A stretch of 32,000 bases of DNA from Wallemia ichthyophaga EXF-994 (Eukaryota > Fungi > Basidiomycota): NCBI RefSeq assembly GCF_000400465.1, contig NW_008806277.1, positions 210,001-242,000 of the forward strand, written 5' to 3'. The notes beneath the pieces are model-generated. The model did not search any database. It saw only the letters and a program-made list of their open reading frames with translations, and was not told where the DNA came from. The first letter of the stretch is position 1. Every line of letters starts with the position of its first letter. Below, in pieces: positions 1 through 26,202 of the stretch. A program made the position numbers and the translations under genes.

Positions 1-197
1 ATTTGCTCTCTCAACAAATTGAAAGGTTGATCGTTTGTTGCAATGGCAAAACTTAGCCAAGGCAGAAGAAGGTCTCATTCTACATAAATTGTTGTATGCC
101 TGTGTCATAGAGTCTCTCAAAAGCAAATATGTTCACAGCGTCGTCGTCATAAATGTTTAGGTGAATCTGCATATGTAAATCATGTACATAAAATAGT

Positions 198-950
198 TTA
201 CTCGGCCTTTGGAGCTGGCAATGGGGCTTGTGCCTTCTTGCCACGGACCTTCTTGGCTGGAGCATCCTTCTTTTGGCCTTTAGAAGCGTAAATGGCTGAA
301 ACCTTAGCAACAGCTGGCTGAAATTGCAAGTTAATACGCAATATAGGAGTCTCAATCGAGAGTATAAACTGAGGTTTAGTTTTATCAATGTCATTCGCTT
401 GAATGGCCAGAGAGGTACGATGAAGTCTTGAAGACAACACCAATCTGGTAAAGTGATGCGAATATTTTAATATAGCAACACAAATACGCCTGACCTTTCA
501 AAAAGTATTTCGAGGGGGTTCTAGCGTGTTGCGATCGCAGTTTATACTCTCGATTGGATTGAGGTTTATCACTCACCTTGACAAGATCTGGGCGAGTAGT
601 AGCAACAACATTGGCAGTTGACTTGTAAGCACGACGCTTTCCTCCAGTGACTTGGGTCTTAGCGAAGCCCTTGTTCCATTGGTTGACTGGGGCCTTGGTC
701 TTACGAGCAACGATTACAGCACCCTTGTCGTGTGGGTTGACACCAAGAGCCTTTTGACCATTGATGGTTGAAGAGTACTTGTAAGAGTGGTTTGCGAGCA
801 AGTTACCAGGCTCAGAAGACAACTTGTGGGAACCTGGTGCACTTGGGCGAATGAAAGAGGAAGATTTACGCAACAAGAGCCATTGGAGATCACCTGACAC
901 TGGAGAATCGTTGTTAATACGTTAAAGCACATTAAATTCTAATTCTAACT
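198..950 (-). CDS. RPL28: 60S ribosomal protein eL28, about 147 aa; exons 950 (A of ATG), 899-577, 317-198
   Basis: MSGDLQWLLLRKSSSF...EPGNL...HSYKYS is the Ribosomal_L28e N-terminus. The ATG is split A|TG by a 50-nt GT-AG intron (949-900). A 259-nt intron (576-318, GTGAGT...TATTAAC...CAG) joins in phase 0 to a basic C-terminal exon ending TAA at 198-200. Confidence 0.92.
353..556. repeat. Perfect 19-bp inverted repeat (353-371 / 538-556) bracketing the intronic snoRNA
   Basis: CAATCGAGAGTATAAACTG at 353-371 is the exact reverse complement of CAGTTTATACTCTCGATTG at 538-556. Confidence 0.95.
386..537 (-). ncRNA. Intronic box H/ACA snoRNA in RPL28 intron 2
   Basis: Hairpin 1 closed by GCAACAC/GTGTTGC (532-526/481-475). 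H box ATATTA (ANANNA) at 473-468. Hairpin 2 closed by ATTCGC/GCGAAT with upper stem CCAGA/TCTGG. ACA box at 391-389. It sits in the only long intron I found in the window. Confidence 0.85.
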
Positions 951-1230
951 TTTTTCAAGAGTGCTGTATCGCAAGAGGTTTAGACCAAGCACAAAAACCT
1001 TCACGAGTGAATTTTTTTATTTTAAATATATTCGAATGCTATTTCTTGCTAATCTGCGTGTGTATATATCCTGGCCTCGTCCATCACGCACTCTAAACGA
1101 GGTCTACGCTGTCGTTTGGTCTTCTATTCGACGTCGAGCAGCGCGATCTTATAATCTGCGCCCAAGTATATCGAGTTAAACTTCAAATGATGTCTAGTAC
1201 TCTTTGGGCTGGACGTTCTCTTTCTTAACC

Positions 1231-1266
1231 AGATGCTAGATGCCAGATGCCAGATGCGAAGATGCG
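1231..1266. repeat. Five tandem AGATGC(N) units upstream of RPL28
   Basis: AGATGCT AGATGCC AGATGCC AGATGCGA AGATGCG, starting at 1231, 1238, 1245, 1252 and 1260. Confidence 0.8.
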
Positions 1267-1851
1267 CAACCTCTAAAGGCAAAATGTTCTTGTCTGGTTT
1301 GGCTACGAAGAGCATCCATCTTGAAATCCATTTCTCGTTTTTATCTCAAATGTAAAGGTAATAGCACTATACTATTATAAGCGATTCCGACATCTTCCAA
1401 CTTTCGCACAAAATACTTGTTGAAAATCGTTCTAGGTCAGAGCTTTGTGGCTAATTAAGAAGTCCAGTTTCGTTCTCGAACTGCATTGCTTGCATTTCTG
1501 AATTTCCAACTTCGGCAGTGCCTTAGATTCGGCAAAAGATGTAAAGATTTGAGGATATATTTCGGTGTTTATCTCTCTTTATTCATTTGGTGATAGTGTG
1601 AAATGATCTATACTATGTCAGTTTACATAATGCACTTTACAGCTTCGCAGACAATCATTACAGCTCCAAGATAGCCGATAATCACAATGCTCGAAAATTG
1701 TTACAATTATTACTAACAATGCAGCAATGCACTAATCACCATGTTTGTAAAGCCAGCTGCACATTCCAAGCAAAGCAGGGTAGACTTTTCATCAGTAATC
1801 TTAATATTATTCAAAAATAGGTCAATACAATAAAGCGTTCGAGTTCGTAAC

Positions 1852-3398
1852 TTAAGGAGTGTATTCATAGTCTACATCTTCATTTGGTCTTCCGTCAGAC
1901 ATCAGAATGACAGAGTAACGACCGGATAATCTCCAATCCTTCTCTTCCTTGTCCAACTTCTCCGCAACACCTGGTGGTAAACCGACGACGACATCCGACT
2001 TGATAGTCCTCATGGAGCAGACAGGTGGTGCTCCAGGTGCCGATGCTAAAGTACCGATGGCCTCACTGAATGGTGTTGTTGGTGGAGCGCGACAGTCGTA
2101 GGTCAATTTGCGGTGGTTGAGATCACCCTTGAAGAAGACCAACTTGGATTGGTGAAGATCCAAGAACAGATCAGGGCTGACCTCAAGCAAGTGATAGAAA
2201 GTGTAACCAGAGATCCAGAATGGGTGTTGCTCGTATATAATCTTTCCTTGCTGTTCGTATCTCTTCCAACGATTACCCAAAGCACGTAATGAGTTCAGTT
2301 CCTCTGCAGTACCCTTGAACAATCTACCATAGCATGCAGAGTTAATTAACCATTCCCAGTCCTTCTTAGTTACGTCAGAAACGAACCAAGCAAATCTCTT
2401 TCCATGAAATTTGACTTGATCAGCTAAGCCAGCTTGGATAAGGAAGTCAGCCAATACCAAATCAGTAAACAACTCGAAACCGGCATTGTCGAGGACAAAG
2501 TCGATTCTACCGTTTTTGTTGTTCTTCAACTGATTCCAGACTCTTTCTATGTCGTTACCGAGGATGTTTTTCTGCGTGGCAGCGAGTTGATCTCCGCCAG
2601 TTGATTGCAAGTTTTTAATATCTTCCTCAGTCATGTCGATCAGGAGGGAAAGATCGGTAGAGTTTCCCCATAAACAAACTTGGAACAATTCCATGAAAAT
2701 GAGTTTTTTGGCATCGTCATTTGGAATGTGGAAGGGCTCAGCAAAACGCGTAGCTAATTCAAAGACGGCGTGAGATGAGCGGGCGAAAGTGTCACACTTT
2801 TGTCTGAAGAATACGTCGTAGTCCTGGAAGTACTTGGAGAAGGAGAAACAAGAGTGAAGACGACGGTACTTGTAAGCTTCAGCAAAGATCCATGGAGCGC
2901 TCATAAAGTCCTTTCCTTGGAAGTACTTCGCGATTTCCTTGTTCCAGATAGCGATATCACCAGAGCCATCGTCAGGGATAGGTGTGAGCTTCTTGTTTGA
3001 TTTGAGATCGTCCATGAGTGTATCCATTCTGAGACAGGATGATTAGAAAGGAACAAACGAAAGGAGAGATCGTACCTTTCAATACAGGAAAGTAAGTCAA
3101 GAATCTCATCTTCCTTTGAAAGTCCATTTAAAGTGATGATTGTGTCTTCGATGGCTTTGCCGAGGATGGTAGGCAAACGACGGCCCATGACATCGTTTGC
3201 GAAGGAGAACGTGTGATAGCCTCGGAAGGCAGGGAATGGAGGAGATTCAGGGTTAACGTACTTTGCGTCGATCTTGTTAGGTTCGGCCATGTAGGAGCGG
3301 GATCTTGGAGGCATGTTCTTCAATCTGAGCTGCACAGAAGAAGGAACAGAGGCGTTAGGAATGTCTACGCTGCCATTTGGTGTTTGTGGTTGAGCCAT
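1852..3398 (-). CDS. DUF89/ARMT1-family damage-control phosphatase, about 499 aa; exons 3398-3076, 3028-1852
   Basis: Family motifs RLPTIL, PWIFAEAYKYRR, CLWGNSTDLSL, DNAGFELFTDL, WFVSDVT, FKGDLNHRKL, RTIKSD. A 47-nt intron (3075-3029) fuses the two listed ORFs in frame. The start codon could be a downstream Met. Confidence 0.9.
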
Positions 3399-3551
3399 AT
3401 TTGAAAAATTGAAGATGACAGTAAAGGGTTAAGGAGGATGATGAAGAATGTGTGGATTGCACTTAGCCAAAGCGACGTCATCGAGGATAATTGGAGTGCG
3501 GGGAGAGTGGAGAAGATTGGATGATATAAAGTAATGTAAGTGTGAGAGTGT

Positions 3552-4009
3552 TTATTCAGTGGCTACAAATCCTTGTATATCCAAATCATATATGGTCACT
3601 CTACCGTAAAAATCCGTCGAACTGTTGAAAAGCAATTTAATATTGTTGGATATCGTCTTATTGTGATTTATACTGAAAGACTGCATTTTGTTGTTATCCT
3701 CAGGATAAAAGCCATCCTGACCAAGCTGGTTGCTGTTGTGATAATACACAATCTGGCAGCTCTTTCCTGAGAATCCACCTTGAAATGTCAATATCAACTT
3801 ATCTATTATATAGTTTTGACCAAATTTTAGCTGGACAGACTGTGGACTGCCCTGTGCGCTTGACCAGCAAGTGTCACTCGATCCATCGATCAGATTAGAC
3901 TTGTTTGAGAACTTATCGATGTTTGATGAAACCCTGCGTTGATTTGTAAGTTGAACTGCGTAGATACATGCACATACTTGACTTTTGTCTCTTTGTTGAT
4001 AACGCTCAT
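3552..4009 (-). CDS. NR2C2AP/TRA16-like galactose-binding-fold protein, about 137 aa; exons 4009-3978, 3933-3552
   Basis: Spliced product MSVINKETKVKVSS...DTCWSSAQG...LTFQGGFS...FYPEDNN...STDFYGRVTIY matches the NR2C2AP signature I recall (TCWNSDQG, FQGGFS, FYPEDNN, TDFFGRVVIY). 44-nt GTATGT...CAG intron. Confidence 0.85.
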
Positions 4010-4035
4010 CTGCACGCTCTTGGTAATATCATCGT

Positions 4036-4674
4036 ATGAGTAGACTGGAAATTTTAAACGGCGATAATTTTAGATTTGATGGTAGGAAGCCACTCGAGTT
4101 TAGGTCTTTAAATTATAAGTTGGATGATAACAACGTTTACTTCAATCAAGGCCTGACTAAGTTGAAAGTTAACATAAGCGGTTATCACAACTTCAATAAG
4201 CAAGATATCAATATATCCGTCAACAACGTCAACTCGAACCTCTCTAAATCAAAAATTGAAAACCTTATCCAGCAATTGAAGTCCACATTCCTCTCCGTCA
4301 TCAGATTCCACTCAAAGTCATCAATACAAATCAATATAGACATATTGAACTTTGATGGTAGCTTACTATCAACCGCCATAAACGCATTATCACTTTCTTT
4401 ATCTTTAAACGGCATCGAACTACTCGATATAGTCACTTCAACAAATATTGGTGTTTTCAACAATAACCTTTTAATAGACTTGAATAATTTCGAAGAACTA
4501 GATTGCCCTTCAATAACTCTAGCCTCTTTATCTAATTTTGAAAGTTTATCTTTAATTAATCTTGATTCAAAGCTACATTCCTCCTTCTTATCTGACATCA
4601 TTTCTCTATCTACTTCGAGTAATCAAGTATTGAGAGATGATTTGTCCAGTATTTTGTTGTCAAATGCTGTTTAA
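4036..4674 (+). CDS. SKI6: Exosome RNase PH-like subunit Ski6/Rrp41 (divergent), 212 aa
   Basis: N-terminus MSRLEIL...RFDGRK..EFR; RNase PH motifs I.IDIL..DGS...AINA.SL.L and LLIDLN.FEE. Confidence 0.8.
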   Translation: MSRLEILNGDNFRFDGRKPLEFRSLNYKLDDNNVYFNQGLTKLKVNISGYHNFNKQDINISVNNVNSNLSKSKIENLIQQLKSTFLSVIRFHSKSSIQINIDILNFDGSLLSTAINALSLSLSLNGIELLDIVTSTNIGVFNNNLLIDLNNFEELDCPSITLASLSNFESLSLINLDSKLHSSFLSDIISLSTSSNQVLRDDLSSILLSNAV

Positions 4675-5575
4675 GAACTCCGTTAATGCATTCATCGTTC
4701 TATTCACATCATTGTCCTGCCAAACATTAACTCTCATCCCACCCTTGAATACGATGAACATGGTCGGTTGATACTCATTAACACCTAATATACCTCCAAT
4801 TTCCTTATTCATCATCACATCCAACCTCATGAACCCGTTGTTCATTCCAGGAATTCCTCTTTGAGCAGCTAAATGGTAGAATGCTTGTGATAATTCAACG
4901 CTATTCGATGAATATGTCGTCAATGGTGATACCTTTATTCCCTTTCAATTTCATAATACTCTATACCACGCAACTCACCGTCATCAGAATGGCTTTGTAA
5001 TTACTCATGATTATATTCTGCATCATCTCCTTTGAGATTACATTCAGCGTCGGCCATTGTGGTAAAACATCTGCTGATTGATATTGCGAATTGGGTATCA
5101 TGGGTAGATTCATTCGAATGTTATTTCTGGCATGATCATTTCCCACTCCTCCACCAAGTGCAGCCTGCGTCCCTACCATTCCTGTACCCCCAATTCCCCC
5201 GAAAGACCCCACACTTCCTGCATTGATGAATTCTGGAAACTTAGCTCCACAAAGAAAGTCGATTGCTTTGTCTGTGAACGTATTTCCATTCCTGTACGCC
5301 ACGTTGTAGCTTCCTGCGTTGAACTCACTACAAAGACCATCTAAAAAGTCCTTATATGTGTCCTCGTCTATTTCTGTAATCCCAGTATTGATGACTCTAG
5401 ATGGCGTCCCTTTGTAAGAGCTGCCCGGTGGTGCCAAGGACCTGATGCCTTCATAACTAAACTCAAACTCTCTATTGAATACCACAACGGTTGTGTGACT
5501 TCTCCCGTTACTGCTCAAGTACCTTATTGCCTCGTTGCTCCAATCATAAATGGCTATTTCGACCTTATTTCCCAT
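4660..5575 (-). CDS. PPPDE/DeSI peptidase-fold plus thioredoxin-fold protein lacking both catalytic cysteine motifs, about 289 aa; probable exons 5575-4979, 4932-4660
   Basis: V.IAIYD..., HTTVVV..REF, G.P..VI..G.TEI, SYN...RNGNTFT...FL.G..P resemble PPPDE. The C-terminal part (RLDV...GV...PTMFIVFKGG.RV..W) resembles thioredoxin. Putative 46-nt intron 4978-4933 has a strong donor but a weak branch site. Confidence 0.72.
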
Positions 5576-6509
5576 GATGGTATTAATTGTGATATTAAGT
5601 GGTTAATTGTATTTGATTATTGGGTTGTACAAATTAAATGAGCAACGTCGCGATCGCGCTATCGCTGGCGTGTTGATTGTTCAAACAAGAGTACGATAAT
5701 CGTCATTAGTCCAGTTTCTTGCTGAATTTTCTCCCTGTTGATCCCTGTTGAATATAACTTGTTTTGTGTACTCGTGTGTACAACCACAATGGCTCTTTTT
5801 CATTGCCTCCGCTTGGTCACAAGTACCAAAAAAATGAATACGTAATTTGAATGGCTACTTAATTTTGTTTAGTTGTCAAACGACTGTAGGGATGCAACAT
5901 AAAGTGGAGGTCACCTCAGCTTATTATACGATGGCTTACATTTTCAAACTTTCCTAGCTGTTAATTACAAGACAACACCATATTCATCCATACATGAAAC
6001 TTATTGGGGGTTGTCATGTACGTATCTGTAACATAAGATTCTCGGCGTGAAGATTCGAAGACTTTTCAGCGTGAATAAGATCGGCATGGATAGCGACGTG
6101 GATAAATTAAATTGTAGAATGCTAAAATTCACTAAAAATTTGGACAGCTCAAATAATCGAAGTCACACTGCGATGGATCTGATTGGCAGTACTCTAAGCA
6201 AACATCGAACTCGATTAGTGAGCTAGTTTAGGTCCACAAGGAGAAGTTTTAATAAATTGTATAATTAAAACCATTTCAGGCTGATGTTTAAGCAGCATAT
6301 TATACGTCTTTGTAAGAGAAAAGAAGTAAATAAACTGAGTGACGGATGACAAAGTGATTATATGGAATTTTGATTAGAGGCGGCCTAAACGAGATCGGTT
6401 AGCAATCTATGGGTGAGTAAATACTATTAGATGGTATGATATTCTTCAAACGTTGATGATAGATCAAAGCAGCCTCAATGAGTGCTCGTGATGTCATCCG
6501 AAAACTCCG

Positions 6510-7030
6510 AAGAGTGACTGGAAGTGAGAACCTACTGTATATACTGTACTTTTGAAATCAAGGACGGAATGAATTTACATTTCAAAATGCATGCATTCAG
6601 TTAATTTGTACTGGAAATGACCGAGAGGGAAAACAGTATGGGTTCAGCACAATCATACAGCATTGAGATTTATATTACAAAAAGTAAGCAAGGATAACAT
6701 GCTTAAAACTAAGCGCATTAACGATGTAAAAGCACGGTGGACGACATCCTACTTGCTCTGAGGCTGTTGGGACGCCATACGCGCTCTATCTCCATATCGC
6801 CCTTCCACCAGACTAAACTGCTAAATAGAAACTGCAACTTTCATTTACAATTTAATTTGATTTATTTACATATTCGCTATACTAAACATTCTCTTAATCC
6901 ATCAGCCTGACACTTACAAGACTAGCTAAAATCTTCAGTGTTCAATGGAGAAGAATTGTTAGAGTGTACTATGGGCAATCAAAATCGAAATTAAAGGATT
7001 TAGTAGTGAACGGTATAACTTAAGAAGTCA
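6510..7030 (+). repeat. Old degenerate inverted repeat, left copy (pairs with about 13245-13785)
   Basis: Anchor 6800-6820 matches the reverse complement of 13461-13481 at 20/21. Further collinear anchors fall on one anti-diagonal (coordinate sums about 20275-20296). Boundaries are approximate. Confidence 0.75.
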
Positions 7031-7408
7031 TATGGCTATACACATGCTGGATAATCTCTAAACGATGCAAATGAAATCTGAAATGCAGGCGGAAGAGCAA
7101 ACACTGAAATTGTTTTTGATCAAAAGTCTCGGATCACCATACATAAATCAGTGAATAAATGAAAACTTTCGATAATGCGTGAAATACGTAAGTATGATAT
7201 TAAATAACGCCAATGCTAAGGTTCGTTTGTGTACTTTGCAATCTAAAACAAGGGAAACATCATTTACAAATCAGAAGTACGATAGATATAAAATAAGATA
7301 GTATAATTAGGTAGAGTTAAAATGTAAACGGCCGAAACCAAAAGTAAGTCAAGCCTGTTGATTTCTAGGAAATAGAAAGTCGTCATACACTAGCCAGAAT
7401 CGTAATAG

Positions 7409-9011
7409 CACCGCTATGAATATCACAAAATGAGTACAAAAGGTTAGGTCACTATAAAAGGCAAATGAAAAGTGACCTGACTCGACATCTATGTGGCCCT
7501 TTCGTCTTGTATAAAGTCGAAAATCGCATTACACTGATTAAGAGTGTAATTATCAAACTTTTCAGTAATTTGGAATGTAATATTTCAGGATAGATAAGGC
7601 CCGAATGGGAAATAATCTGATTCAACATGAGTATTAACCAGGCCCTAACAAAACTCGCAGATCCTTATGAAATTGTATGTGATGAGATTAATTTGATATT
7701 TGTCTTGTTTTGAGTTGAGCGTGTTTATTTGGCTTGTGCATAGATAGATTAGCCAGATTGAAGGGCCAAATTGTAGAAAAGAGCCAAATAACAAGCCGTT
7801 AAGGTATCTGACACAGCTACTGCTGGATCTATTGATCCTTAGCTCGTCGCTAGTTTATAATCACCACCGAATTAATGATCGAAAGAGGAAGCTAAGTGTA
7901 ACACAGGTTTAAAAGTAGTTTACTCTCAACAGAAGAGATCGGTTTGTATTTGAAAGACTATCACTGCGATTGAAACATACGGGGAATTGTCTTTTCTGGG
8001 CGAGATGCTTCCTCATCACAGTTATAAGAATTACTTAATGATAAACAGATGAACAAAATGTACTCTTGCCATATGTAACCACAAACGTATGCAAATATAC
8101 ACATTAGAGATCAAGTCGTTACGTAGAACCTTTGAGGGCGAGTCACGATTGAATTTCAGGTCCAATTATAGAGAATATCAAAAGAAACTGACTATAATAT
8201 TTTAAAACTGACTTATTCATTGTTCAATTTGGGAGATGCACACTAGTAGACTTTAAGGGTGCAACATTGGAAAACGTTGGGGTTGCTCAACATAACATTT
8301 CTAATTTGGCTAACCGCTAGATAAAAAGCTAGACCAACCCAATAGCAATTACAAAGTGTAGCCCACCGAGTTTTAATTCAGAAAAGCTCATGATTAAATA
8401 CAAATTCTGATAGTATCATACATCGTTTCAAAGTAAAAACGGTTGGAAGGCTAGCTTACGGTACAATTACAGCTGAAGATAAAATGATTACATCTAATAA
8501 AACTACAGATCGCAAATCACCTGAGACCAACAAAATACAGAAACATTAAGCAATAGTACTTGTAGCGTGATTAGTAAAACCGTAAACGTTCATGCTTCAG
8601 CCCACTACAGGTAATCACTAAAAAGGTGGCCTTCAACGAAATGAGACACGAAAGTAAGAAATATAAAGTTTTCAAAACCATTGTAAGTTTCCAAATAAAG
8701 TGAAGGTCGTATTCAAAGCTACATTATTAATGATCAAACGATCACTATACCGAGATGAGCAGGTGTGAAAACTCTCATTTTCTGAATGAGACATAATTAC
8801 GAAATAAACTGCTATAACTTCCATCAAACAACTTCATGTTGGAAAGAAAAGCTACGCGAAAGCAGCATTATTTGCCAGACGTTCCCTATGGGATTTTAAG
8901 AACGTTAGTGTTGAGCTAAGACTTCATTCGAAAGATAGTGTTAAGAACCATTCGTTGATGTGAATCTTTTGCACATAAACTGTACATTTTAGGACCATTA
9001 TCGCAAGTCAT
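7409..9011 (+). repeat. Long inverted repeat, left arm (1603 bp)
   Basis: Line-by-line reverse-complement comparison with 10091-11693 gives a constant coordinate sum of 19102 and 5 mismatches (7539, 8897, 8900, 8992, 9008), about 99.7% identity. Confidence 0.97.
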
Positions 9012-10090
9012 CATAGAGATCCAGTTATCTTTAGATTCTTTGCATAATGTCATTTCGAAACTAAATCAGACGCGAGATAGATAATTTTCGGCTCGTTATA
9101 TGTCATTGTCATAACGGCACAAGACTTTTTTCACATTACCTTTCTATATCTATATAAGATATTCAGAATAGAAAAAGTTAAAAGTTGAAATGTCAAGTAA
9201 TATAAGACAATTAAGTTTAACAGCTACTCCTAAAGTACGCGATTTAAATTCTAGTAACAACTTTCATCTCCCCTTGATTAACGACATTTGGATTGAGGCA
9301 TGGTTGAAGTAACACTTACAATGTCGAGATAATGAATTAAAAATTCAAAGTTGAGTTTATCGATTAACTCAGAATTGCATCATTTCAAGAATTTTTAAAA
9401 GAGATATGCACCTTTTTTTTTTCAACTTATAGACTTACAAATCAATAATCTTCAAACACACATATTAGAAGGAGGCAGGATCTAGCTATATACTTACCAT
9501 ATAATCGTTACTGGATGCCCTCAGCCTTTGAGAGAAACAAACAAAATCATTTATTTTTTGGGCTTGAGTGATCAATTGTTTTTAACTTTATTGACATTAA
9601 TAGCCTGAATTTATCACAGGAAGTTGTTTCCTCTTCCTTTTGTTGTAAAAGAAAGACCAGGTTATTTTAAACGCAAACAGGTTTTTGTCGAAAATGTTCC
9701 CTATTTTTGAAAACACAGGCTTATTTAAGCATTTGATTGAGAATTTCTTTCAATCATCCTTCGATCAATAACTCAATTTAAAGCAGATCAACGCCAAATC
9801 CCCACTCACTAACAATCTGACTGTTAGCATTGAATTGTGAAATTTTGATGTCAGAACAGATTTCTGTTACAAATGAAGTACAGATCACCATTTCACATTT
9901 AAATTCTAGCAAAAGCACGAAATTAATAACGAAGTTAGGTCCAAAGCAGTGCAAATCATTTACATTTATCAGATGATGTAAATGTGATTGAAATATATAT
10001 TTTTTTGCTAATGTCTTCCTCACATCACATTAGCACTATTCGTGCCGATGGAAAAAAATAACGGAGTCCAATGATTCGTGGAGATTCAAA
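9012..10090. other. Unique AT-rich core (1079 bp) between the IR arms
   Basis: No internal palindromy seen; poly-T/A runs; sampled lines are about 22-30% GC; no credible ORF. Confidence 0.85.
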
Positions 10091-11693
10091 ATGGCTTGCG
10101 ATAATGGTCGTAAAATGTACAGTTTATGTGCAAAAGATTCACATCAACGAATGGTTCTTAACACTATCTTTCGAATGAAGTCTTAGCTCAACACTAACGT
10201 TGTTGAAATCCCATAGGGAACGTCTGGCAAATAATGCTGCTTTCGCGTAGCTTTTCTTTCCAACATGAAGTTGTTTGATGGAAGTTATAGCAGTTTATTT
10301 CGTAATTATGTCTCATTCAGAAAATGAGAGTTTTCACACCTGCTCATCTCGGTATAGTGATCGTTTGATCATTAATAATGTAGCTTTGAATACGACCTTC
10401 ACTTTATTTGGAAACTTACAATGGTTTTGAAAACTTTATATTTCTTACTTTCGTGTCTCATTTCGTTGAAGGCCACCTTTTTAGTGATTACCTGTAGTGG
10501 GCTGAAGCATGAACGTTTACGGTTTTACTAATCACGCTACAAGTACTATTGCTTAATGTTTCTGTATTTTGTTGGTCTCAGGTGATTTGCGATCTGTAGT
10601 TTTATTAGATGTAATCATTTTATCTTCAGCTGTAATTGTACCGTAAGCTAGCCTTCCAACCGTTTTTACTTTGAAACGATGTATGATACTATCAGAATTT
10701 GTATTTAATCATGAGCTTTTCTGAATTAAAACTCGGTGGGCTACACTTTGTAATTGCTATTGGGTTGGTCTAGCTTTTTATCTAGCGGTTAGCCAAATTA
10801 GAAATGTTATGTTGAGCAACCCCAACGTTTTCCAATGTTGCACCCTTAAAGTCTACTAGTGTGCATCTCCCAAATTGAACAATGAATAAGTCAGTTTTAA
10901 AATATTATAGTCAGTTTCTTTTGATATTCTCTATAATTGGACCTGAAATTCAATCGTGACTCGCCCTCAAAGGTTCTACGTAACGACTTGATCTCTAATG
11001 TGTATATTTGCATACGTTTGTGGTTACATATGGCAAGAGTACATTTTGTTCATCTGTTTATCATTAAGTAATTCTTATAACTGTGATGAGGAAGCATCTC
11101 GCCCAGAAAAGACAATTCCCCGTATGTTTCAATCGCAGTGATAGTCTTTCAAATACAAACCGATCTCTTCTGTTGAGAGTAAACTACTTTTAAACCTGTG
11201 TTACACTTAGCTTCCTCTTTCGATCATTAATTCGGTGGTGATTATAAACTAGCGACGAGCTAAGGATCAATAGATCCAGCAGTAGCTGTGTCAGATACCT
11301 TAACGGCTTGTTATTTGGCTCTTTTCTACAATTTGGCCCTTCAATCTGGCTAATCTATCTATGCACAAGCCAAATAAACACGCTCAACTCAAAACAAGAC
11401 AAATATCAAATTAATCTCATCACATACAATTTCATAAGGATCTGCGAGTTTTGTTAGGGCCTGGTTAATACTCATGTTGAATCAGATTATTTCCCATTCG
11501 GGCCTTATCTATCCTGAAATATTACATTCCAAATTACTGAAAAGTTTGATAATTACACTCTTTATCAGTGTAATGCGATTTTCGACTTTATACAAGACGA
11601 AAGGGCCACATAGATGTCGAGTCAGGTCACTTTTCATTTGCCTTTTATAGTGACCTAACCTTTTGTACTCATTTTGTGATATTCATAGCGGTG
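10091..11693 (-). repeat. Long inverted repeat, right arm (1603 bp)
   Basis: Reverse complement of 7409-9011. Pairing stops abruptly at both ends (after ...CATAGCGGTG at 11693 and before ATGGCTTGCG at 10091). Confidence 0.97.
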
Positions 11694-11914
11694 TAATTTT
11701 CCTACTGATGAATGCTTAATGTGACTTTAGTTCACACAAAGACCTCTTGTTACACTCTTCCTGTTGCTAAAATCTTAACTAACTCTTTCTTCAGACATGA
11801 AACATTAATGCCATCATGCATTAGGGGGTTCCTTACCTGAGAGATTTCTGTAACTCTTTAGTAGGGCTATCACTCCCTGAACCCCAATCGCGTTCGAAGT
11901 TGTAGAAGTAAGTT

Positions 11915-12325
11915 CGTACTTTTCGATCTTTTCTTTGTACGTGTTGTTTGGTACCAGTTCTTGGTATGATTACGATACGTGTACAAAAGTTATGAATTTC
12001 AAAATGTCATTTTCGTACGCCGTAAAATATATCGAAGGTATTCGACCTGACAAAATATAAAGTGGATACCGATTGATAGTTTCATTTAAATGAATTTTTA
12101 TTCGATAATAATTATAATTCTCATTGTATTCCAGGGAGCACAGCACGATATAGTACCCGTACTTTTCGTACAGTGAGATCGAAATGCGTACAAAGTTAAC
12201 GTCTACGGTATGAGTACAAAATTAAATAATCTGTATGAGTGCAACATTACAGAATGTTTATTAATTTGTACAATTCAATTAAAGCCAATGATGAGCTGCA
12301 CCAGAGTCGAACTTGCTTCACGTAC
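11915..12325. repeat. Cluster of 12 GTAC-core motifs, loose consensus TTTTCGTAC / CGTACAAA
   Basis: GTAC at 11916, 11937, 11951, 11981, 12015, 12153, 12159, 12168, 12188, 12214, 12268 and 12322, plus one at 12612. CGTACTTTTCG is repeated exactly at 11915 and 12158. Confidence 0.7.
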
Positions 12326-13244
12326 GAAATTACGTTTAGTGATAGCACTACTGTTCAGTAGCACTGTATTGCAGTTCCCTAAACTCTTTGAAAATGCTTG
12401 TAAGGATTCTAAACGTAGTCTGTGTATCAATAAGAAGCTTCGATGTTTGAAGTCAATGCCTCGTCGAGATTACTTAGGGTGTAAAACTGCAGATTGCTGC
12501 GCCAAATAATTTACGTATTGGACTTAAAGTTCTAAGTTATTGATCTTCGTAATGTAATCTAATGCCTTGTCCCTTTCCTACTACCTATGAAGAGCAAAAC
12601 CCGGGTTTCACGTACAAATTTCGCTGTCAAGCCTGTGCTTTTTAAGTTACTGTGTTAACTGAGCTGTTCAACGAAGGTTAATGTATCTGCTGATTCGTCA
12701 GCTATAAGCTTGTATGCATGCGTAGCTTGTTCGCGCAAGTGGCGTCTTTTTTTTCTCTTGTTCCGATTTGTTTAAGCGTTCTTTGCGAGTGATATCACTA
12801 GGCGTGTCTGGAACTTTCTGCGTAATTTCGCCCAACAGTCTAATCCATGTAATCGAAACAAGTCTCAGATTTCTATTCGTATCGGGTTTCTTGCACGATT
12901 ATCCTCTGTTTATGAGAATAAAACATCAGGCCCAAAGCCATTCTCTTCTTCCCACTTTTCAGTTTACCTTAGCCTACAATTTTTAGTACTTTTTAACAAG
13001 TGCATGTCTGTAAGGTTCTAGGAAAGTCTTGACATGTTTTCAAGTTAACTCTCTTTTCTGTGCATGACTTGGTCTGGACATATTTTAGTAGCACGCTGCT
13101 GCTTTGGATGCTTTGAAGGTCTTACGTTAGTACCTATAGCTAGATATAGTATTACATTGATGGGTGGTGGGGACACATTTTAATGCAATGATTATTTCCT
13201 ACACCATGCTTTCTTCAGACATAGCACCCACTACTATAATTCAT

Positions 13245-13785
13245 GTAATTCTTAAGTTTTTGTTGGTATCACTTAATGTTTTGATTCCATTACACAGAAA
13301 CGATTTAACAAATTGTCTAAGTTCCATATTGCTGTGTTGAGGAATTGCTTGTACAGCGATAAAACAGATAGAACAAATTTAATAAGTGAGATTAATCTGA
13401 AGTATGTCATGAGGAAAGGCGTGTTTGTACAGTAAATGTGAATTGTAGAACTCCATGCTTCAGTTTAGACTGGTGGAAGGGTAATATGAAGAAAGTTAGA
13501 CGTGAGGTGGCGCATGTGGAGTGCCAAAAGCCTAGCAGCAAGAGGAATACCATCCATCGTGCTTCTTTTTGTTACCGCGTCTTATAATATATTTTTGACT
13601 CTTGCTTAGTTTGTATAAAATACATCTCAACAATTTGCAGAATGTGTCGGGCCCAGCGGTGTTCCCTTCCGGTCGGTTTTCAGTACACCCTGACCTAATG
13701 CACGCATCTCAAAATGTGGTCTTTTGCTGATTCCTGATTTCAGAGAATGCAACAGGCGCAATCGGCTCTCACTTTTGGTCACGTT
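13245..13785 (-). repeat. Old degenerate inverted repeat, right copy (pairs with about 6510-7030)
   Basis: Anchors: TTCTTAAGTT (13249), CAGTTTAGACTGGTGGAAGGG (13461), CCAAAAGCCT..AGCAAG.AGGA, CCATCGTGCTT, CTTGCTTA, ATCTCAA, CAGTACA (13681), AATGCA.GCAT, TGATTTCA, CTCACTT..GTCAC (about 13766-13782). Confidence 0.75.
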
Positions 13786-14132
13786 CTAGTTTTTCTAAGT
13801 ACCGGTTTCATGAATATCATGATAGATTACCTTTAGCGCAATCTTGGACGGCACAAACAAGCCTAAATGAGATAACTACCTTGATGACAACATAATGCAG
13901 AGAAAGATATGTTCAATATCAGTACTCTCATATTAATTCGCAACCTTTATGCTTGTCGTATCGAGACTGTTGAGCAATTGAATAGGCTTGAATTGAGATT
14001 TTATCTTATTTTATAAATTCGTTAGTAATTATGCGATGGGTGGGTGGGTGTAGCGATCAATACCAGCTGCGGACGGTCGTATAGTCTAGAAATTTTTTAG
14101 GATGAGACAATGAATCATATCTCGATAACTAT

Positions 14133-15235
14133 CTATTTAAAATAATCCGGTAATATGTAGGACAGTTTCTCTTTCGACTCCTTCGTGAATTTGTCTTTGG
14201 ATGTAACAATGCTAAATTGCATGGAGCCATTCTGGGAAGGAATCTTGTTGGCTGATATTGCATCATGAACATGTTGCAAAACATTTTGGGCCACGAATTT
14301 TGAGTTTTCAGCGTTAGTGGTTAAAGTTTTGATCACTTCAGCGACTGTTACAGGCTCTTCATTCATTCTCCATGCATCATAGTCTGTTGATGTGCAGATG
14401 AGCGAGTACCCTAATTCTGCCTCTTTAGCCAATTTGGCTTCAGGAATAACGGACATATTAATAATATCAGCTCCTAATTGTCTGTACATCCTAGATTCGG
14501 CACGAGTAGAGAACTGAGGACCCTCCATACAAACTAGTGTAGAGTCGCGATCACCATGGTTAGTATGCAGATTCAAACCTGATGGTAAAACTTGCTTGAC
14601 AAGTGGGGCAATAAAAGACGATAGCTCAGTAGTAAAGGGTTCACCAAACATAGCATGGGCAACTACTCCCTGATTCAATCCAAAGTAAGTATGCTGTCTA
14701 ATGGACTTTGTGCGATCGATGACCTGGTTCGGAATAATGAAGTCACCTGGCTTGATCTCCTCTCTGAGAGAACCCACAGCAGAAAAGGCAACAATGGCCT
14801 TAACGCCTACGTGTTTCAAAGCAGCAATGTTAGCTTGACCATTAACTTCAGATGGAGTAATGGAGTGATTGATGCCATGCCTAGCGATGAAAGCAATCTG
14901 AGCTCCTGACGGAAGAGCAAGAATCATTACATTTGAGCTTGGTCTACCCCAAGGCTAGGAGAGAAATAAGAAGGCTGGAGAAAGGAGAAGAAGAGACTAA
15001 CTGTTTGAACACCGACATCCTTGACATGCTTCAAACTGTCAAGCTTGTAGAATCCGCTGTAATCTTGGTTAGAAAATTATGGAGTATAACGGGACAAACC
15101 TTCCACCTGTAAGAGAAATGCTTGAGTACAGGCAGAAACATAAGCAGAAGTAGGGAATTACCAATAACACCAATTAAAGGATCTAAAATATGTAAGCTTA
15201 GCTTAGTTTCCAAACACCGCCAACTCACTCGTCAT
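14133..15235 (-). CDS. MEU1: S-methyl-5'-thioadenosine phosphorylase (MTAP), about 303 aa; exons 15235-15229, 15182-15162, 15106-15100, 15056-15002, 14954-14133
   Basis: Spliced N-terminus MTNPLIGVIGGSGFYKLD...TPWGRPS; motifs [51 protein letters not shown]. Four 43-55-nt GT-AG introns give a continuous frame. Confidence 0.93.
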
Positions 15236-15262
15236 CGTCGTTTTGATACGGTCACGCTCAGG

Positions 15263-16670
15263 ATGGATAAGAAAATAGATATTTCAACAGATAGCAAAAA
15301 TCAGAGTAAACTTTCGTCTGCAGGTGAGCAGCACCACAATAAACAATTTATAGCGACTAACTTATCTAAGGTCTATCCGTTGTAAGCTATTGTCTTGCGT
15401 CGATAGCGATGACAGTAAGTAGAGGTGTACCTCAATCACGGCCTTGTTGAAGCACATTGATATTAGGTAATAAACAGTAAGCTGGTTATCCTGTGTCTTC
15501 CTAACTGACCTTGGATAGAATATATTGTGTCTGGCAGAGGCTTTGACATGAATTTATTGTTATTAGCTATACAGTCTATAGTTTCGATATCATTAGTGTC
15601 TGGTTTGAAGTCGTTGAATGTCATCAACTTCCGAAACTTCAATTGGTCAGATACCAAGTCCTGGTTTCCAGTTAGCTTTCTTTTAGCTGTCGTCATTTAC
15701 ACCGGCTCCAAGTCACTGCAGCATCTTCAAATACCAGTTTATACCATTTTCAAGAACCTAACAATCATCCTCATTGCATACGGTGAAACTTTGTGGTTTG
15801 GCGGTTCGATCTCGAAGCTAACCTTCTTTTCATTTCTTTTGATGGTCCTATCTTCTCTGGTAGCTGCATCGGATGATATTGTCAGCGCCTTTTCACATGT
15901 CGAGTCACCTGGTTCGGCCAATGGATACTGCTGGATGCTTACAAATTGTCTCTCTAGCGCTGCATATGTGAGCATCCAGATTTCAACTCTGTATCAGCTG
16001 ACGGATGCCTTAAGGTCCTCTTGATGAGGAAGAGAATAAAAGTTACCGCTTTCAAAGATTGGGATTCAATGGCGTGGGTTTGAATGGAAACTGATTCATT
16101 GTTGCTAATAGTTTTAAGATACAATAACGCTCTCTCAGTTCCTTTGCTCGTATTTGCGTCGCTGGTCAAAGAAGACTGGTCGTTAGAGTCGCTAGAGAAA
16201 AATTTCCCACCTTCAAACAGACACTTATTGTTGTCGACGATAGTATTTTCTGGAGCAGCAGCAGTTAGTTAAGACTACGATCTACTTGAAGCGAGCTAAA
16301 AATATCTACAGGTAGGGATTAGTTATACAACAGCTTGGTGCGTGCGTACAACGTCCTCAACAACTTACTCGTTCGTGAAGCTTTTGACGTTTAACTTTTC
16401 TGATAAGTTGTATAGCATGGTAGGAGCATTGAACAAATTGCCAGTCGCGGCATCTGGGTTGATATTCTTGTGTGTTTTACGTTTTACAAGAAGGATAATA
16501 AGCTAACATAAACATTCAGTAACGATCCAGCTACACCGAAGTCCATATCAGCCATAGCGATTGGATTCGTTGCCGGGGTAATGTATACAATAGCGAAGCA
16601 AAATCAAACGAGGATAGGAGCGCAAAAGCAAAACAGTTATATACCTCTAACGAGCAATAACAACAAATAA
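15263..16670 (+). CDS. VRG4: Golgi GDP-mannose transporter, multi-exon
   Basis: [84 protein letters not shown]. Internal exon boundaries only partly traced. Confidence 0.9.
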
Positions 16671-19214: not shown

Positions 19215-21910
19215 ATGGAGGAATAGTGAGTGTATCGGCTTGTGATTCTTATTCTAATAAATTCATAGTGCACCGCTTACACCAACATCAATCCCTTCGC
19301 CCACAACTTCCTCAAAGGAGTTATACAACTACGGCTTACAGTACCCTCCCACTCCCAAACAACACAAGTCAAATTGCTTGCCAGAATCCTCTAATCATGC
19401 TGCCACCTTAAATTCATCTAATCCACCTTTGTTGAAGCTCCTTGGTATTCCACAAACAGGTGCTAAATCTAGAGTCGAGACTCAAATCAAGATCATTCTC
19501 CAGCTTGAGAACATTCCCAATAATCAATGGAACTTTATCAGACTTCCCTATGGCTCAGCTTCGAAAAAGAGATCTAAGAGAGGTGCACCAATGCCTTACG
19601 ATGTACCTAGGCACAATACCCTCTATCTGGAAACCCAAGTCAACTGTGCAACTGCTCCTTATTGTCCCGTCTATGCTTGTTCTCCTTGCAAAGAACGTGA
19701 AAAGAAGCGTTTCCAGCGTAAACGTGATGCTAGAAGACGTCCAAGATCGAAATCTGATGATGAAGGTCAAGACGACGCTCTACTCAATTCCGCTCCCTTA
19801 CCCGTTAAAGATCAATGGGAGCGTAATAAGATTACACTCTTCAATTGTGGTGAACTTGTCCCTCTCAGTGAGGATATCGCTTATGAAGGTGCTCAACCAT
19901 TGCCAACCGCTGTTCTTCCAACGCGCGTCACTTGTTACTGTAGGCATCACCGTGAAAAGACCGGTTTTACAATAGGCTTTACCCTCAAGCAACACGATGG
20001 CAGCGTTGTTGCATCAAACAAATCACCACCGATTATGATCACGGATGATCACAAGACCTCAACAGGTAAAACGTCTAATTACGGTGAGCAAAGCTCAATC
20101 AAATGTCGCAACCCATTGAAATCTACAAGAGGTATCAAAGATGACGCTCTACTTGCTCAATCCGATACCAATGACAGAAAACCTTATACGAGAAATACTA
20201 GAAGGCAAAACTCACCTTTGGAGATAAATCTCGCCAATAGTTCTAGTCAATCATTCGTATCACCATCTGATTACTCAATGAAGAATGCCCTCAACACCAC
20301 TCCCTCAACAACCCCCAGTCCACCCAGGAGCATCAAAAAGTCTTTGATAGGAGACCTTGAAGGCTCAGCAGGCTTACCCAAAACCTTGGAAGAGTCTCTC
20401 GTCAAGTTTGAACATACTGATGAGCTCGAGACGTATTTGACGTCTAGCTTGAGTGTGCAATCACCTATACAGTTGAATGATTCAGCTAATACGTTAGATG
20501 AATCCAATTCGAAAGGCAACAATCCAACGTTTGATTCAGAAGTAGATAAATACATCGAAAGTTCTTGGGTGGATGATGGTATTAGCAGAAACGAAAGCAT
20601 TAATATATACAATGGTCCGAAAATTTCTAGAGTTGTACCATTTGAGGGACCTACAAGGGGTGGTACAGAGATTACAATCCTCGGTCAACACTTTCCCGAT
20701 GGGTTGACTGTATACTTCGGTTCAAATGCTGCATCTAGGGTCACGAGATGGGGAGAATGTACACTAGTATGTTTGTTGCCGCCTTCGTCCAAGCCTGGGA
20801 CTGTAAGCGTCTCATTAAGAGGATATAATACGAGCGATGAACAACATGGAGACAATCCATTGACTTTCACGTACATCGATGAATCGGATAAAGCTTTAGT
20901 TAGTCCCTTCTCTTTCACGTATTTCAAAGCTGACAATCACCTAGATGGAGCTCGCCTTAAAAGTTCTTGGTTACAATCTCACAGGTAAATATGAGGATGC
21001 AAGAAACGTTGCAATGAGAATCGTGGGAACCGAGAATGGCGAAGGGCAAGTGGATGATAAAGCAAGCAATACTTTGAGTGCCACCAACTTTGATCTTGAA
21101 GCATTCACAATTAATGCGCTACGATTGCTCGATTACAGACAGAACGTCGATAGTTTAAACCTTCTCAATAAACAAAGACAGACGATACTACATTTATCCT
21201 GTCAATTGTCAATGGTGGAACTGACTCAAAGCCTGATTGAATGTGGTGCAGATGTAAACGCAAGGGACATCAATGGATTCACACCGTTGCATTTCGCTTA
21301 CATCAGTAAATCTGAGAATTGCGCAAGAATGTTGTATAATAGCGGCGCAGATGTTGAGGTTGTAAACGCTTGCGGTATTTCTGCAAAGGAGCTTGGTGAA
21401 CTTACGTACTCGAATAAGCTCTCGATACAAGACAGTGAAGACGCTGATGACGAAATCAACTTCTCAAGCGCTGAGGACGACTCGTCATTAGATGATAGAG
21501 TAAGTAAAAGCAACTTACTGCAATCAAATGACAGAGGGACGATTAAAGATCTTGAAAAGAAGGATAATGAGGAAGAGATTGGCTACCAAGAGAAGGCACT
21601 TGAAGTGTTTTTAACAAATCTTAGTACAAAGCTAAGTGAAAAGACCGGTTGGAATCCCGCTGGCACCACATCTCGCTTTACTAAAGTGGAAATGGAAGCA
21701 AATGGAGAAAGTCTCGTCGATGAGGAGGATTGGTCAACGAGAGCAAAGAAAAGAGCGCAAAGCGTCGTTGAGGACGTCCGCCTAATGTTGTTTTGGGCAC
21801 CGGTGCTGCTTTTATCCTTGGTTTTCTCGTTCATCTCAATAGCACCGTTCATTAATAGGGTCGGTAACCAACTAGCACCACTACTAGGACTACAAGCAAA
21901 TTCTGAATAA
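19215..21910 (+). CDS. Spt23/Mga2-like membrane-bound transcription factor (DNA-binding domain, IPT/TIG, ankyrin repeats, C-terminal TM)
   Basis: KSRVETQIK, RVTCYCRHHREK.GF, PIMITDDHK, IPT (ISRVVPFEGPTRGGTEITILG), MELALKVLG, ankyrins (QTILHLSC, NGFTPLHFA), hydrophobic C-terminus. Introns after the MEEY exon and at 20899-20944. Confidence 0.88.
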
Positions 21911-25877: not shown

Positions 25878-25953
25878 TTGCTGATTTATTCGTTAACATC
25901 AACTCCTCTGTATCCGCCTTATCAACTCACGATCCCCTATATCAATTTAGCTC

Positions 25954-26202
25954 ATGGGCAAATCTGCTAAATTCACAAAGAAACCTTTAAATAAAAAATT
26001 ATCAAAAAACAAAAATATAAATGCATCGTCTAGCTCTAATACTACAAGCCAGAAACATCCCACAACGAATCCTCCGCCACCTTCACACTCCGCAAAGCGT
26101 AGAAACAGAATTGTACAGCTATCAAATCAAGCAAAGGAAGCTAAATCAAAGGGCAGAACTGTGTTAGACGATAAAGATTATTTGAAATTATATGAAAAGT
26201 GA
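25954..26202 (+). CDS. Small basic hypothetical protein, 82 aa
   Basis: ATG in an A-rich context, K-rich MGKSAKFTKK start, ends VLDDKDYLKLY. Function not recognised; a further 3' exon is possible. Confidence 0.55.
   Translation: MGKSAKFTKKPLNKKLSKNKNINASSSSNTTSQKHPTTNPPPPSHSAKRRNRIVQLSNQAKEAKSKGRTVLDDKDYLKLYEK

Follow-up and report, generated by a model that had tools for sequence, protein, structure and literature searches.

Gene content and organization of the locus

The window analysed here is the 32-kb stretch at positions 210001–242000 of scaffold KE007227.1 of the salt-loving fungus Wallemia ichthyophaga EXF-994, whose genome is very compact (9.6 Mb); according to its published analysis, coding sequence makes up 73.6% of it and repeats 1.67%, and a gene is accompanied by about 0.5 kb of non-coding DNA (PMC3849046). 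The window contains a single large gene-free stretch (5576–14132; 8.56 kb), which is AT-rich and about 16-fold the average amount of non-coding DNA that accompanies a gene in this species. It is bounded by a PPPDE peptidase gene, whose ORF is 98% identical to W. ichthyophaga protein P0121 (reference annotation at L010 7824–8739), and by a methylthioadenosine phosphorylase (MTAP) gene, whose ORF is 100% identical to W. ichthyophaga P0001 (Table 1). Neither the reference annotation nor those of other strains place a gene between them, and ORFs of at least 100 aa are absent as well; a 99-aa ORF (12210–12509) in the right gap has no family match. A six-frame search of the gene-free region revealed no Pfam domain relics, reverse-transcriptase, integrase and transposase relics were found nowhere in the region, and searches for tRNA genes and for Rfam families at E ≤ 1 likewise returned nothing. 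The left outer flank is presumably the promoter and 5' region of the PPPDE gene; its sole match in the sister species is a faint one at 5626–5680, beside that gene (E = 0.086). Low GC also occurs elsewhere in the window, at 25001–26000, which lies inside a gene and has 30% GC.

From the outside inwards, the stretch consists of a decayed outer repeat, a gap, a 1.6-kb near-identical repeat and a 1.0-kb AT-rich core, followed by the mirror image. A self-blast of all 32 kb identified these two inverted repeats (IRs) as the sole repeats of the window. The old pair bounds the gene-free stretch and the young IR lies inside it, off-centre.

Table 1. Coordinates of the features of the locus within the window
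Feature	Position	Strand	Remarks
PPPDE (Peptidase_C97) gene, first exon or ORF	4961–5575	-	Left boundary of gene-free region; Pfam PF05903, E = 2.3e-20
Left outer flank, unique	5576–6500		925 nt, 37.1% GC
Old IR, left arm	6501–7031	+	531 nt, 36.5% GC; alignment against shuffles; in six other strains
Left gap between old and young arms	7032–7403		372 nt
Young IR, left arm	7404–9038	+	1635 nt, 35.7% GC; 99% complementary to 10064–11698
Central core	9039–10063		1025 nt, 31.3% GC; most AT-rich segment of region
Young IR, right arm	10064–11698	-	1635 nt
Right gap between young and old arms	11699–13205		1507 nt, 37.7% GC
Old IR, right arm	13206–13793	-	588 nt, 39.1% GC; alignment against shuffles; in strain L001
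Right outer flank, unique	13794–14132		339 nt; downstream of MTAP stop codon
MTAP gene, last exon or ORF	14133–14927	-	Right boundary of gene-free region; Pfam PF01048

The young inverted repeat

The young IR has a coordinate sum of 19102 (axis 9551) and surrounds a core with no palindrome of its own. Its arms differ by 19 mismatches, 18 of them near the ends and one in the body (7409–8896; 1 in about 1490 sites). The inner ends are frayed, with 13 mismatches in 9008–9036, and the outer edges are sharp rather than graded. The outer flanks (...AGAATCGT on the left, TTCCTACTG... on the right) share no direct repeat that would represent a target-site duplication. We considered whether this palindrome is a foldback or terminal-inverted-repeat DNA transposon and rejected the assignment, as the target-site duplication is absent and no transposase domain was found in the region.

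The EXF-994 reference was assembled from short reads with SOAPdenovo at K=21 (PMC3849046). The assembler may have reused one contig for both young arms, and the near-identity of the arms, the arm-core junctions and the orientation of the core could partly reflect such repeat handling. Short-read contigs of other strains stop about 120 nt into the left young arm, and that of strain L001 stops 132 nt into the right one. The repeat junctions are identical among strains that differ by 1.1–1.4% in the surrounding non-coding DNA. The repeat thus predates these strains and yet carries one body difference in about 1490 sites, which, subject to the assembler caveat, would point to ongoing homogenization of the arms.

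The outer pair is an old inverted duplication

The original prediction had placed a second, older IR outside the young one and on a different axis, with arms at 6510–7030 and 13245–13785, which we refined slightly (Table 1). Using Smith-Waterman alignment (+1/-1, gap -3/-1), 6501–6848 and the reverse complement of 13432–13793 matched at 237 of 367 columns (64.6%) with a score of 81, while 200 dinucleotide shuffles scored 14.3±1.45 and never more than 21; blastn with word size 7, as proposed, detected the pair at E = 7.6e-12. The similarity extends inwards, 6850–7031 matching 13383–13206 at 62% identity (score 28; shuffles 14.2±1.5, maximum 19), and when the arms are aligned globally, 360 of the 518 pairs that align are identical (69.5%) and gaps take up 83 columns; the estimate by eye had been roughly 60–70%. 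The predicted anchor (6800–6820 against 13461–13481) is present at 20/21 identity. All four arm ends are sharp, and there is no alignment between the outer flanks (5576–6500 and 13794–14132). The pair, with arms of 0.53 and 0.59 kb, is a genuine but old inverted duplication.

Independent assemblies from further strains contain the arms too: the left one is present in six (L008 and L011–L015; 0–1.3% differences) and the right one in L001 (5 of 588 nt differ). The old IR is therefore not an assembly artefact. The pair evolves roughly neutrally: identity is roughly uniform along its length, transitions and transversions number 89 and 69, and strain polymorphism (0.75–1.3%) is about that of neighbouring non-coding DNA.

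Coordinate sums of the old IR decrease from 20294 for the outer ends to 20237 for the inner ones, which puts its axis at about 10120–10147, as compared with the 10140 predicted and with 9551 for the young IR. The excess of about 1.2 kb on the right that had been deduced from this offset holds as a net asymmetry of 1135–1192 nt; the extra DNA itself cannot be assigned to 11694 to about 12900 or to any other place, since the two inner gaps cannot be aligned (7032–7403 against 11699–13205: score 13, shuffles 13.5±1.6). The proposed age strata are borne out by the single difference in the young body as against a Jukes-Cantor distance of about 0.39 between the old arms. As no alignable DNA links the old and young IRs, two separate duplication events are a simpler account than one smoothly decaying repeat.

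The same position in other Wallemia species

At fourfold-degenerate sites, the sister species represented by locus L009 differs from W. ichthyophaga by p = 0.44 (Jukes-Cantor 0.66). Upstream of its PPPDE gene, at the same position, this species has at least 7.8 kb of gene-free DNA, which contains an IR of its own with arms of 553–601 nt (80–82% identical) around a middle of 1.77–1.88 kb (32.8% GC). The comparison with related species that had been suggested for dating the strata thus uncovered an IR of intermediate age at the same gene-free position, with no sequence detectably alignable to the IR locus of the window and no detectable counterpart of the old arms. A marginal similarity between the core (9627–9706) and the L009 middle (57 of 83 identical) was equalled by none of 1000 shuffles, in a set of 80 comparisons made. 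Because the distances between the old arms (about 0.39) and between the L009 arms (about 0.20) are both below the species split (0.66), both repeats were last homogenized after that split. In W. mellicola, gene order is kept up to MTAP and is then broken exactly at the locus.

Comparison with known centromeres

In IR-type centromeres, CENP-A nucleosomes occupy the core and the inner arms, and the arms stay similar by recombining with each other. Three of the features by which such centromeres are recognized are seen at this locus: several kilobases without genes although the genome is otherwise gene-dense, a unique core between inverted arms, and a position that is kept between species while its sequence turns over and gene order breaks. 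Going by its anatomy, the whole locus is best read as a small regional centromere built on inverted repeats, like those of Komagataella phaffii (Pichia pastoris); centromeres of this kind have yet to be described in this fungal lineage.

K. phaffii centromeres consist of a 2-kb repeat around a 1-kb middle with 37–41% GC (Coughlan et al. 2016, PMC5010909). Like the W. ichthyophaga locus, they are gene-free, enclose a core of about 1 kb between near-identical arms (about 2 kb, against 1.6 kb in W. ichthyophaga), have a GC content modestly below the genome average and consist of unique sequence rather than satellite or transposon DNA; the K. phaffii set also includes a patch of 518 bp that is 65% identical, which is close to the old pair in both respects (PMC5010909). 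However, K. phaffii is an ascomycete with centromeres confirmed by Cse4 ChIP, whereas W. ichthyophaga is a basidiomycete (Wallemiomycetes) whose locus is known from sequence alone, and the K. phaffii description includes no counterpart of the decayed outer repeat that surrounds the young one on a shifted axis (PMC5010909). The centromeres of Candida parapsilosis, C. orthopsilosis, C. metapsilosis and C. tropicalis are similarly gene-free over 5–7 kb, with repeats of 0.44–2.6 kb (85–99.8% identical, some fragmented into sections) around a unique middle (PMC7263194, PMC4741521), and they coincide with interspecies gene-order breaks, as reported for the C. parapsilosis clade (PMC7263194). Their repeat sequences are common to several chromosomes (PMC7263194, PMC4741521), and separate age strata with unalignable DNA in between are not described for them.

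The centromeres of Schizosaccharomyces pombe (central core, imr, otr) share the nested symmetry, with inner IRs flanking a core and outer repeats inverted, but span 35–110 kb and include heterochromatic dg/dh arrays and tRNA boundary genes, while the entire W. ichthyophaga structure measures 7.3 kb, lacks tRNAs and has an outer pair that is decayed and apparently unmaintained. Malassezia is, like Wallemia, a basidiomycete with a small genome (about 9 Mb); the abstract on its centromeres describes AT-rich cores and mentions no inverted repeats (PMC7025860), unlike the core flanked by long repeats seen in W. ichthyophaga. We found no description of Wallemia centromeres in the literature searched. 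Basidiomycete centromeres known to date are either retrotransposon-rich or short and AT-rich without inverted repeats, which counts against an IR-type centromere at this locus.

Alternative explanations

Instead of two nested IRs, the locus might derive from a single one with original arms of about 2.5 kb (6501–9038 and its mirror), in which indels in mid-arm freed the outer 0.55 kb from gene conversion, so that this part alone decayed and no second palindrome ever formed. The frayed inner ends of the young arms indicate that the limits of homogenization do drift, and centromere repeats of C. parapsilosis and C. metapsilosis are reported to be broken into sections of differing identity (PMC7263194). 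Nevertheless, we regard this history as rather unlikely, since the 372-nt and 1507-nt gaps are dissimilar even though a 180-nt piece of old arm at 62% identity is easily detected, and a single IR would consequently need independent sequence replacement on both sides; the sharp outer edges of the young arms argue against it as well. It is unlikely, too, that the nested IRs are real but mark no centromere, the gene desert having its origin in an old local rearrangement or in a foldback-type element that has decayed, or serving as a source of hairpin RNA (siRNA), with the L009 repeat being the same ancestral repeat in concerted evolution. Any IR can persist through inter-arm conversion without a function, low GC is not unique to the locus, and foldback-type transposons share its long near-identical arms and short non-coding centre without an ORF. 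The locus differs from such elements in that no target-site duplication and, in the DNA searched, no other copies were found, and in that its position is conserved between species and its sequence is not. Moreover, the size of the gene-free stretch, the retention of gene-free state, repeat and AT-rich middle at one position despite 0.66 neutral divergence, and the coincidence with a gene-order break favour a centromere; the same criteria found one locus per chromosome in C. parapsilosis, which Cse4 ChIP confirmed (PMC7263194).

The old arms could also be separate insertions, in opposite orientation, of a dispersed element, perhaps with a preference for centromeres, such as a solo LTR or non-autonomous transposon. 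Each copy has sharp ends and a length (0.53–0.59 kb) typical of solo LTRs, and in Cryptococcus and several yeasts centromeres are where retrotransposons cluster. We consider this origin quite improbable: the termini read AAAACT...(A/G)CAT rather than TG...CA, with no terminal inverted repeats or target-site duplications visible, mobile-element domain relics are absent from the region, and repeats make up little of the genome (PMC3849046). When about 40 kb of W. ichthyophaga DNA, the L009 locus and two of the W. mellicola loci (L002 and L005) were searched with a two-arm nhmmer profile, no further copy came up; the W. ichthyophaga part covers about 0.4% of the genome, which leaves room for such an element. 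The conserved 21-mer had no match in a metagenome collection, a weak result. An assignment as LTR retrotransposon or solo LTR was accordingly rejected on termini, duplication, copies in the searched DNA and domain relics. Finally, the arms might be a selected functional pair, either non-coding RNA genes or boundary elements; tRNA genes, for instance, flank fission-yeast centromeres in the latter role. The 21-nt block conserved at 20 positions and the symmetric placement at both edges of the gene-free domain would fit, but folding energies are no better than those of shuffles on any of the four strands (z-scores -0.95 to +0.76), Rfam (E ≤ 1) and tRNA searches are empty, identity is fairly even along the arms, strains vary as much here as in the adjacent non-coding DNA and no sister-species counterpart is detectable. 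A selected pair is therefore hardly credible, and we rejected structured RNA genes as a class for the arms.

Proposed history of the repeats

The original prediction proposed a persistent function that generates or requires IRs. A requirement gains support from the separate IR of L009; that the locus itself generates palindromes is not shown. We propose that the old pair may be what is left of a former repeat-middle-repeat unit, of the size still found in L009 (arms of about 0.6 kb, middle of 1.8 kb), which stopped being homogenized. A new 4.3-kb palindrome would have arisen inside the middle of this unit and pushed the old arms 6.2 kb apart, whereupon exchange between them would have ceased and they would have decayed to about 65–70% identity. 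We give the full explanation, combining a neutrally evolving old IR, an IR-type centromere and this history, a probability of roughly 0.5. More tentatively, Wallemia centromeres in general might be set by dyad symmetry, with repeats turning over in place as new palindromes form inside old ones whose arms decay, and with the sister species retaining at this site a repeat of different sequence. If so, an early-branching basidiomycete lineage would specify centromeres as some ascomycete yeasts do, there would be convergent evidence for selection on IR structure (cruciform or other non-B DNA) rather than on sequence, and the nested strata would preserve, as is rarely seen, the replacement of one repeat by another.

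One observation runs against an origin of the palindrome within the old middle. Under this history the L009 middle should be orthologous to the gaps rather than to the core, yet the only cross-species similarity, itself marginal, involves the core. The dimensions fit the history: the two gaps together measure 1879 nt, near the length of the L009 middle, which could be coincidence, and the old arms, at 531 and 588 nt, resemble those of L009 in size.

Two nested inverted repeats of different age

It had been predicted that a second, much older inverted repeat lies outside the near-identical palindrome at 7404–11698, on a different axis of symmetry. The observation proved accurate, with coordinates almost exactly as claimed. 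In local alignment, 6501–6848 matched the reverse complement of 13432–13793 with 237 of 367 columns identical and a score of 81, compared with 14.3±1.45 (maximum 21) in 200 dinucleotide-preserving shuffles, and blastn at word size 7 returned the same pair at E = 7.6e-12. Chance similarity is ruled out (z ≈ 46). Since homology was also found in an inward block (6850–7031 versus 13383–13206; 62% identity, score 28 versus 14.2±1.5 in shuffles), we define the old arms as the full intervals listed in the table below. A global alignment of these arms contains 360 identical residues among 518 aligned pairs (69.5%) and 83 gap columns; identity is fairly even over the length of the arms, and all four ends are sharp. 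The old axis falls at ~10120–10147, that of the young repeat at 9551.

Two origins of this pattern could be discarded. Both old arms are found, varying by ~1%, in other strains that were assembled independently, which rules out an assembly artefact, and RIP-like decay was rejected because the ratio of transitions to transversions among the arm differences is just 89:69. When the whole window (32 kb) was compared with itself, the old and young repeats were the sole repeats found. The 372-nt left gap and the 1507-nt right gap that separate old from young arms show no alignment to each other, nor do the outer flanks of the old pair, and no further strata were detected among the inner gaps, the outer flanks, the two core halves or the flanks of the sister-species repeat. 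A metagenome scan for a conserved 21-mer of the old arms (20 of 21 positions identical, 6800–6820 versus 13461–13481) gave no match.

Anatomy of the gene-free region

The repeats lie within a gene-free stretch of 8557 nt, extending from the start codon of the PPPDE gene (5575, minus strand) to the stop codon of the methylthioadenosine phosphorylase (MTAP) gene (14133). This is approximately 16-fold the genome-wide mean of non-coding DNA per gene; the genome, of 9.6 Mb, is 73.6% coding and just 1.67% repetitive (PMC3849046). The stretch contains no ORF of 100 amino acids or more and no annotated gene, either in the reference or in the other strains. A Pfam six-frame scan of 5576–10063 and 11699–14132, with stops read as X, found no family at E ≤ 0.1; no tRNA and no tandem repeats of note were found in the region, and Rfam yielded no match, either across the window at gathering score or across the gene-free region at E ≤ 1.

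Features of the gene-free region (window coordinates)
Feature	Position	Length
Unique left flank	5576–6500	0.93 kb
Old left arm	6501–7031	0.53 kb
Left gap	7032–7403	0.37 kb
Young left arm	7404–9038	1.64 kb
Core	9039–10063	1.03 kb
Young right arm	10064–11698	1.64 kb
Right gap	11699–13205	1.51 kb
Old right arm	13206–13793	0.59 kb
Unique right flank	13794–14132	0.34 kb

The GC content of the region is 35.9%, versus about 40–41% in the flanking genes, and reaches its minimum of 31.3% in the core. Low GC by itself is no marker of a gene-free locus, since it falls to 30.4% at 25001–26000, within a long ORF (23940–25877) encoding a PPR-like protein. The right gap holds a 99-amino-acid ATG ORF (12210–12509, plus strand) that has neither a Pfam match nor an annotation; it is intact in strain assembly L001, with two nucleotide changes, one of them replacing E by Q, and is probably a chance ORF.

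Comparison among strains

Short-read contigs of seven other W. ichthyophaga strain assemblies (L001, L008 and L011–L015) end ~120–130 nt inside one or other young arm, indicating that both outer junctions of the young repeat are real and common to the strains. The two young arms differ at 19 positions, 18 of them near the ends and only one in the body (7409–8896). We infer that the repeat predates strain divergence, and the near-identity of its arms would then imply homogenisation, but the assembler may have used one contig for both of them; the reference is a short-read assembly made with SOAPdenovo at K = 21 (PMC3849046). The outer ends of the young arms are sharp, while the inner ends (8897–9038 and 10064–10205) are frayed, the terminal 142 nt holding 16 of the 19 mismatches and the terminal 31 nt alone holding 13. 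The fraying suggests either that conversion seldom extends to the core-facing side of the arms or an older junction on that side.

Relative to the reference, the most divergent strains show differences of 1.1–1.4% in gene-free DNA and 0.4–0.76% in genes. Strain variation in the old arms (0.75–1.3%) equals that of their non-coding neighbours, so that these arms would appear to be under no special constraint.

The locus in related species

In six strains of W. mellicola, the order PPR–SPT23–septin–X–MTAP is preserved, and a glycosyltransferase gene follows within 138 nt after MTAP; neither a gene-free stretch nor the W. ichthyophaga left-flank genes are present there. The break in gene order thus falls precisely on this locus. 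No orthologue of the left flank from W. mellicola was among the protein-search matches. A scan for relatives of PPPDE gave no match.

The left-flank genes are retained in a sister species, represented by a contig (L009) of the Logan read-set assembly of run SRR25399871. Its ARMT1 protein is 95% identical to that of W. ichthyophaga, and at fourfold-degenerate sites the two loci differ at p = 0.44 (Jukes–Cantor distance 0.66). Upstream of PPPDE, at least 7.8 kb of L009 lack convincing genes, and this stretch contains one inverted repeat (3312–3863 and 5739–6291; 82.5% identity ungapped, or arms of ~600 nt with 80.5% identity when gaps are admitted). Its middle of 1.77–1.88 kb is, there too, the most AT-rich part (32.8% GC). 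Just outside the right arm, at L009 6240–6695, a 35-nt motif occurs four times at a spacing of 140–141 nt with 60–77% identity; Tandem Repeats Finder makes no call there.

One marginal match apart, blastn, tblastx, nhmmer and Smith–Waterman alignment with shuffles detected no nucleotide or translated similarity passing controls between the gene-free regions of the two species. With neutral sites at a distance of 0.66, alignment of DNA free of constraint would not be expected, and the comparison neither demonstrates nor excludes homology of these regions. The marginal match joins 9627–9706, in the core, to L009 4959–4877 (57 of 83 columns identical, score 27) in the orientation expected of orthologues; its score was reached in none of 1000 shuffles, but it was found among 80 comparisons, and it could be a trace of core orthology or chance.

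A candidate centromere

The locus shows every sequence-level feature by which inverted-repeat centromeres have been predicted in ascomycete yeasts: a gene-free region of several kilobases, an inverted repeat enclosing a unique middle that is richer in AT, the absence of transposons and satellites, a position that is conserved while the sequence turns over, and coincidence with a break in gene order. In ascomycete yeasts, predictions based on the same features were later confirmed by Cse4 ChIP (PMC5010909; PMC7263194). The dimensions of the locus are, moreover, nearly those of K. phaffii centromeres. Given these features and dimensions, we consider the locus to be best explained as a small regional centromere built on inverted repeats, with a probability of roughly 0.6; it would be a new candidate case within a known class. 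That it is instead a non-centromeric gene desert, or the relic of a foldback element or of a hairpin-RNA locus, seems unlikely, as these readings account poorly for the conservation across species of the gene-free state, the AT-rich middle and the repeat.

The original prediction had gone further, proposing that palindromes formed here at least twice through a persistent function that generates or requires inverted repeats, with an additional ~1.2 kb on the right, between 11694 and about 12900. Both strata are real, and a function requiring inverted repeats is plausible, a centromere being the concrete candidate; self-generation of the repeats and the placement of the additional 1.2 kb were not established.

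To our knowledge, inverted-repeat centromeres have so far been demonstrated only in ascomycetes, namely fission yeast, Komagataella, Pichia and several Candida species. In the accounts that we found, basidiomycete centromeres are described as large and retrotransposon-rich in Cryptococcus, and as short and AT-rich in Malassezia. Our literature search found no account of Wallemia centromeres or of an inverted-repeat centromere in Basidiomycota. If confirmed, the locus would provide the first centromere map for Wallemia and, given its phylogenetic distance from the known cases, would imply that the inverted-repeat architecture arose, or survived, well beyond ascomycete yeasts. Furthermore, the nested strata would record one repeat replacing another, and these repeats of different age, together with a sister-species repeat that is in the corresponding place yet unrelated in sequence, make it testable whether selection at centromeres acts on symmetry rather than sequence. 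Should the locus prove not to be a centromere, it would be no more than a modest curiosity: a gene desert that has been rearranged repeatedly, within a genome that ranks among the most compact of fungi.

Origin of the old pair

The events can be placed in order by their Jukes–Cantor distances, which are about 0.001 between the young arms, about 0.01 between strains, about 0.20 between the sister-species arms and about 0.39 between the old arms, with the species split at 0.66. The old repeat and its gaps have the dimensions of the sister-species unit: without the young palindrome of 4295 nt, the old spacer of 6174 nt would measure 1879 nt (7032–7403 plus 11699–13205), close to the length of the sister middle (L009 3864–5738; 1774–1875 nt), and the old arms of 531 and 588 nt resemble sister arms of 553–601 nt, a numerical match that could be due to chance. 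The sharp inner edges of the old arms and the lack of alignment between the two gaps also bear on how the pair arose. The most economical history, we infer, begins with an ancestral unit of ~0.6-kb arms around a ~1.8-kb middle. A new palindrome would then have formed within that middle in the W. ichthyophaga lineage, and the old arms, left 6.2 kb apart, would have ceased exchange and decayed. The marginal similarity of the core to the sister middle speaks mildly against this course of events.

A single repeat whose outer part escaped conversion is a rather doubtful alternative, as it requires independent sequence replacement in both gaps. Less probable again is that each old arm is a copy of some dispersed element: no third copy was found in the searched DNA, which amounts to just 0.4% of the genome, and neither LTR or terminal-repeat hallmarks nor protein relics were found. 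Paired RNA genes or boundary elements maintained by selection, for which no support was found, are highly improbable. For the combined account, a centromere whose old arms descend from such an ancestral unit, we put the odds at about even.

Genomic setting

Positions 1–13398 of the window are 100% identical to reference scaffold KE007227.1 (strain EXF-994), so that the whole window lies at scaffold positions 210001–242000. The gene-free region is flanked by eukaryotic genes (septin, SPT23/MGA2, ARMT1, PPPDE and a PPR protein), and the right neighbour, MTAP, is 100% identical to a W. ichthyophaga protein. The ORF pairs 1852–3027 plus 2901–3398 and 19378–20988 plus 20945–21910 are exons of ARMT1 and SPT23/MGA2, respectively, each a single intron-containing gene. 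At the left end of the window, 96–312 (217 nt) is 93% identical to positions 15232–15444 of the reference-scaffold locus L010, ~2 kb to the left of the window start; the similarity falls in the area of two tandem Kre9/KNH-family paralogues, a local duplication of genes that has no connection with the nested repeats.
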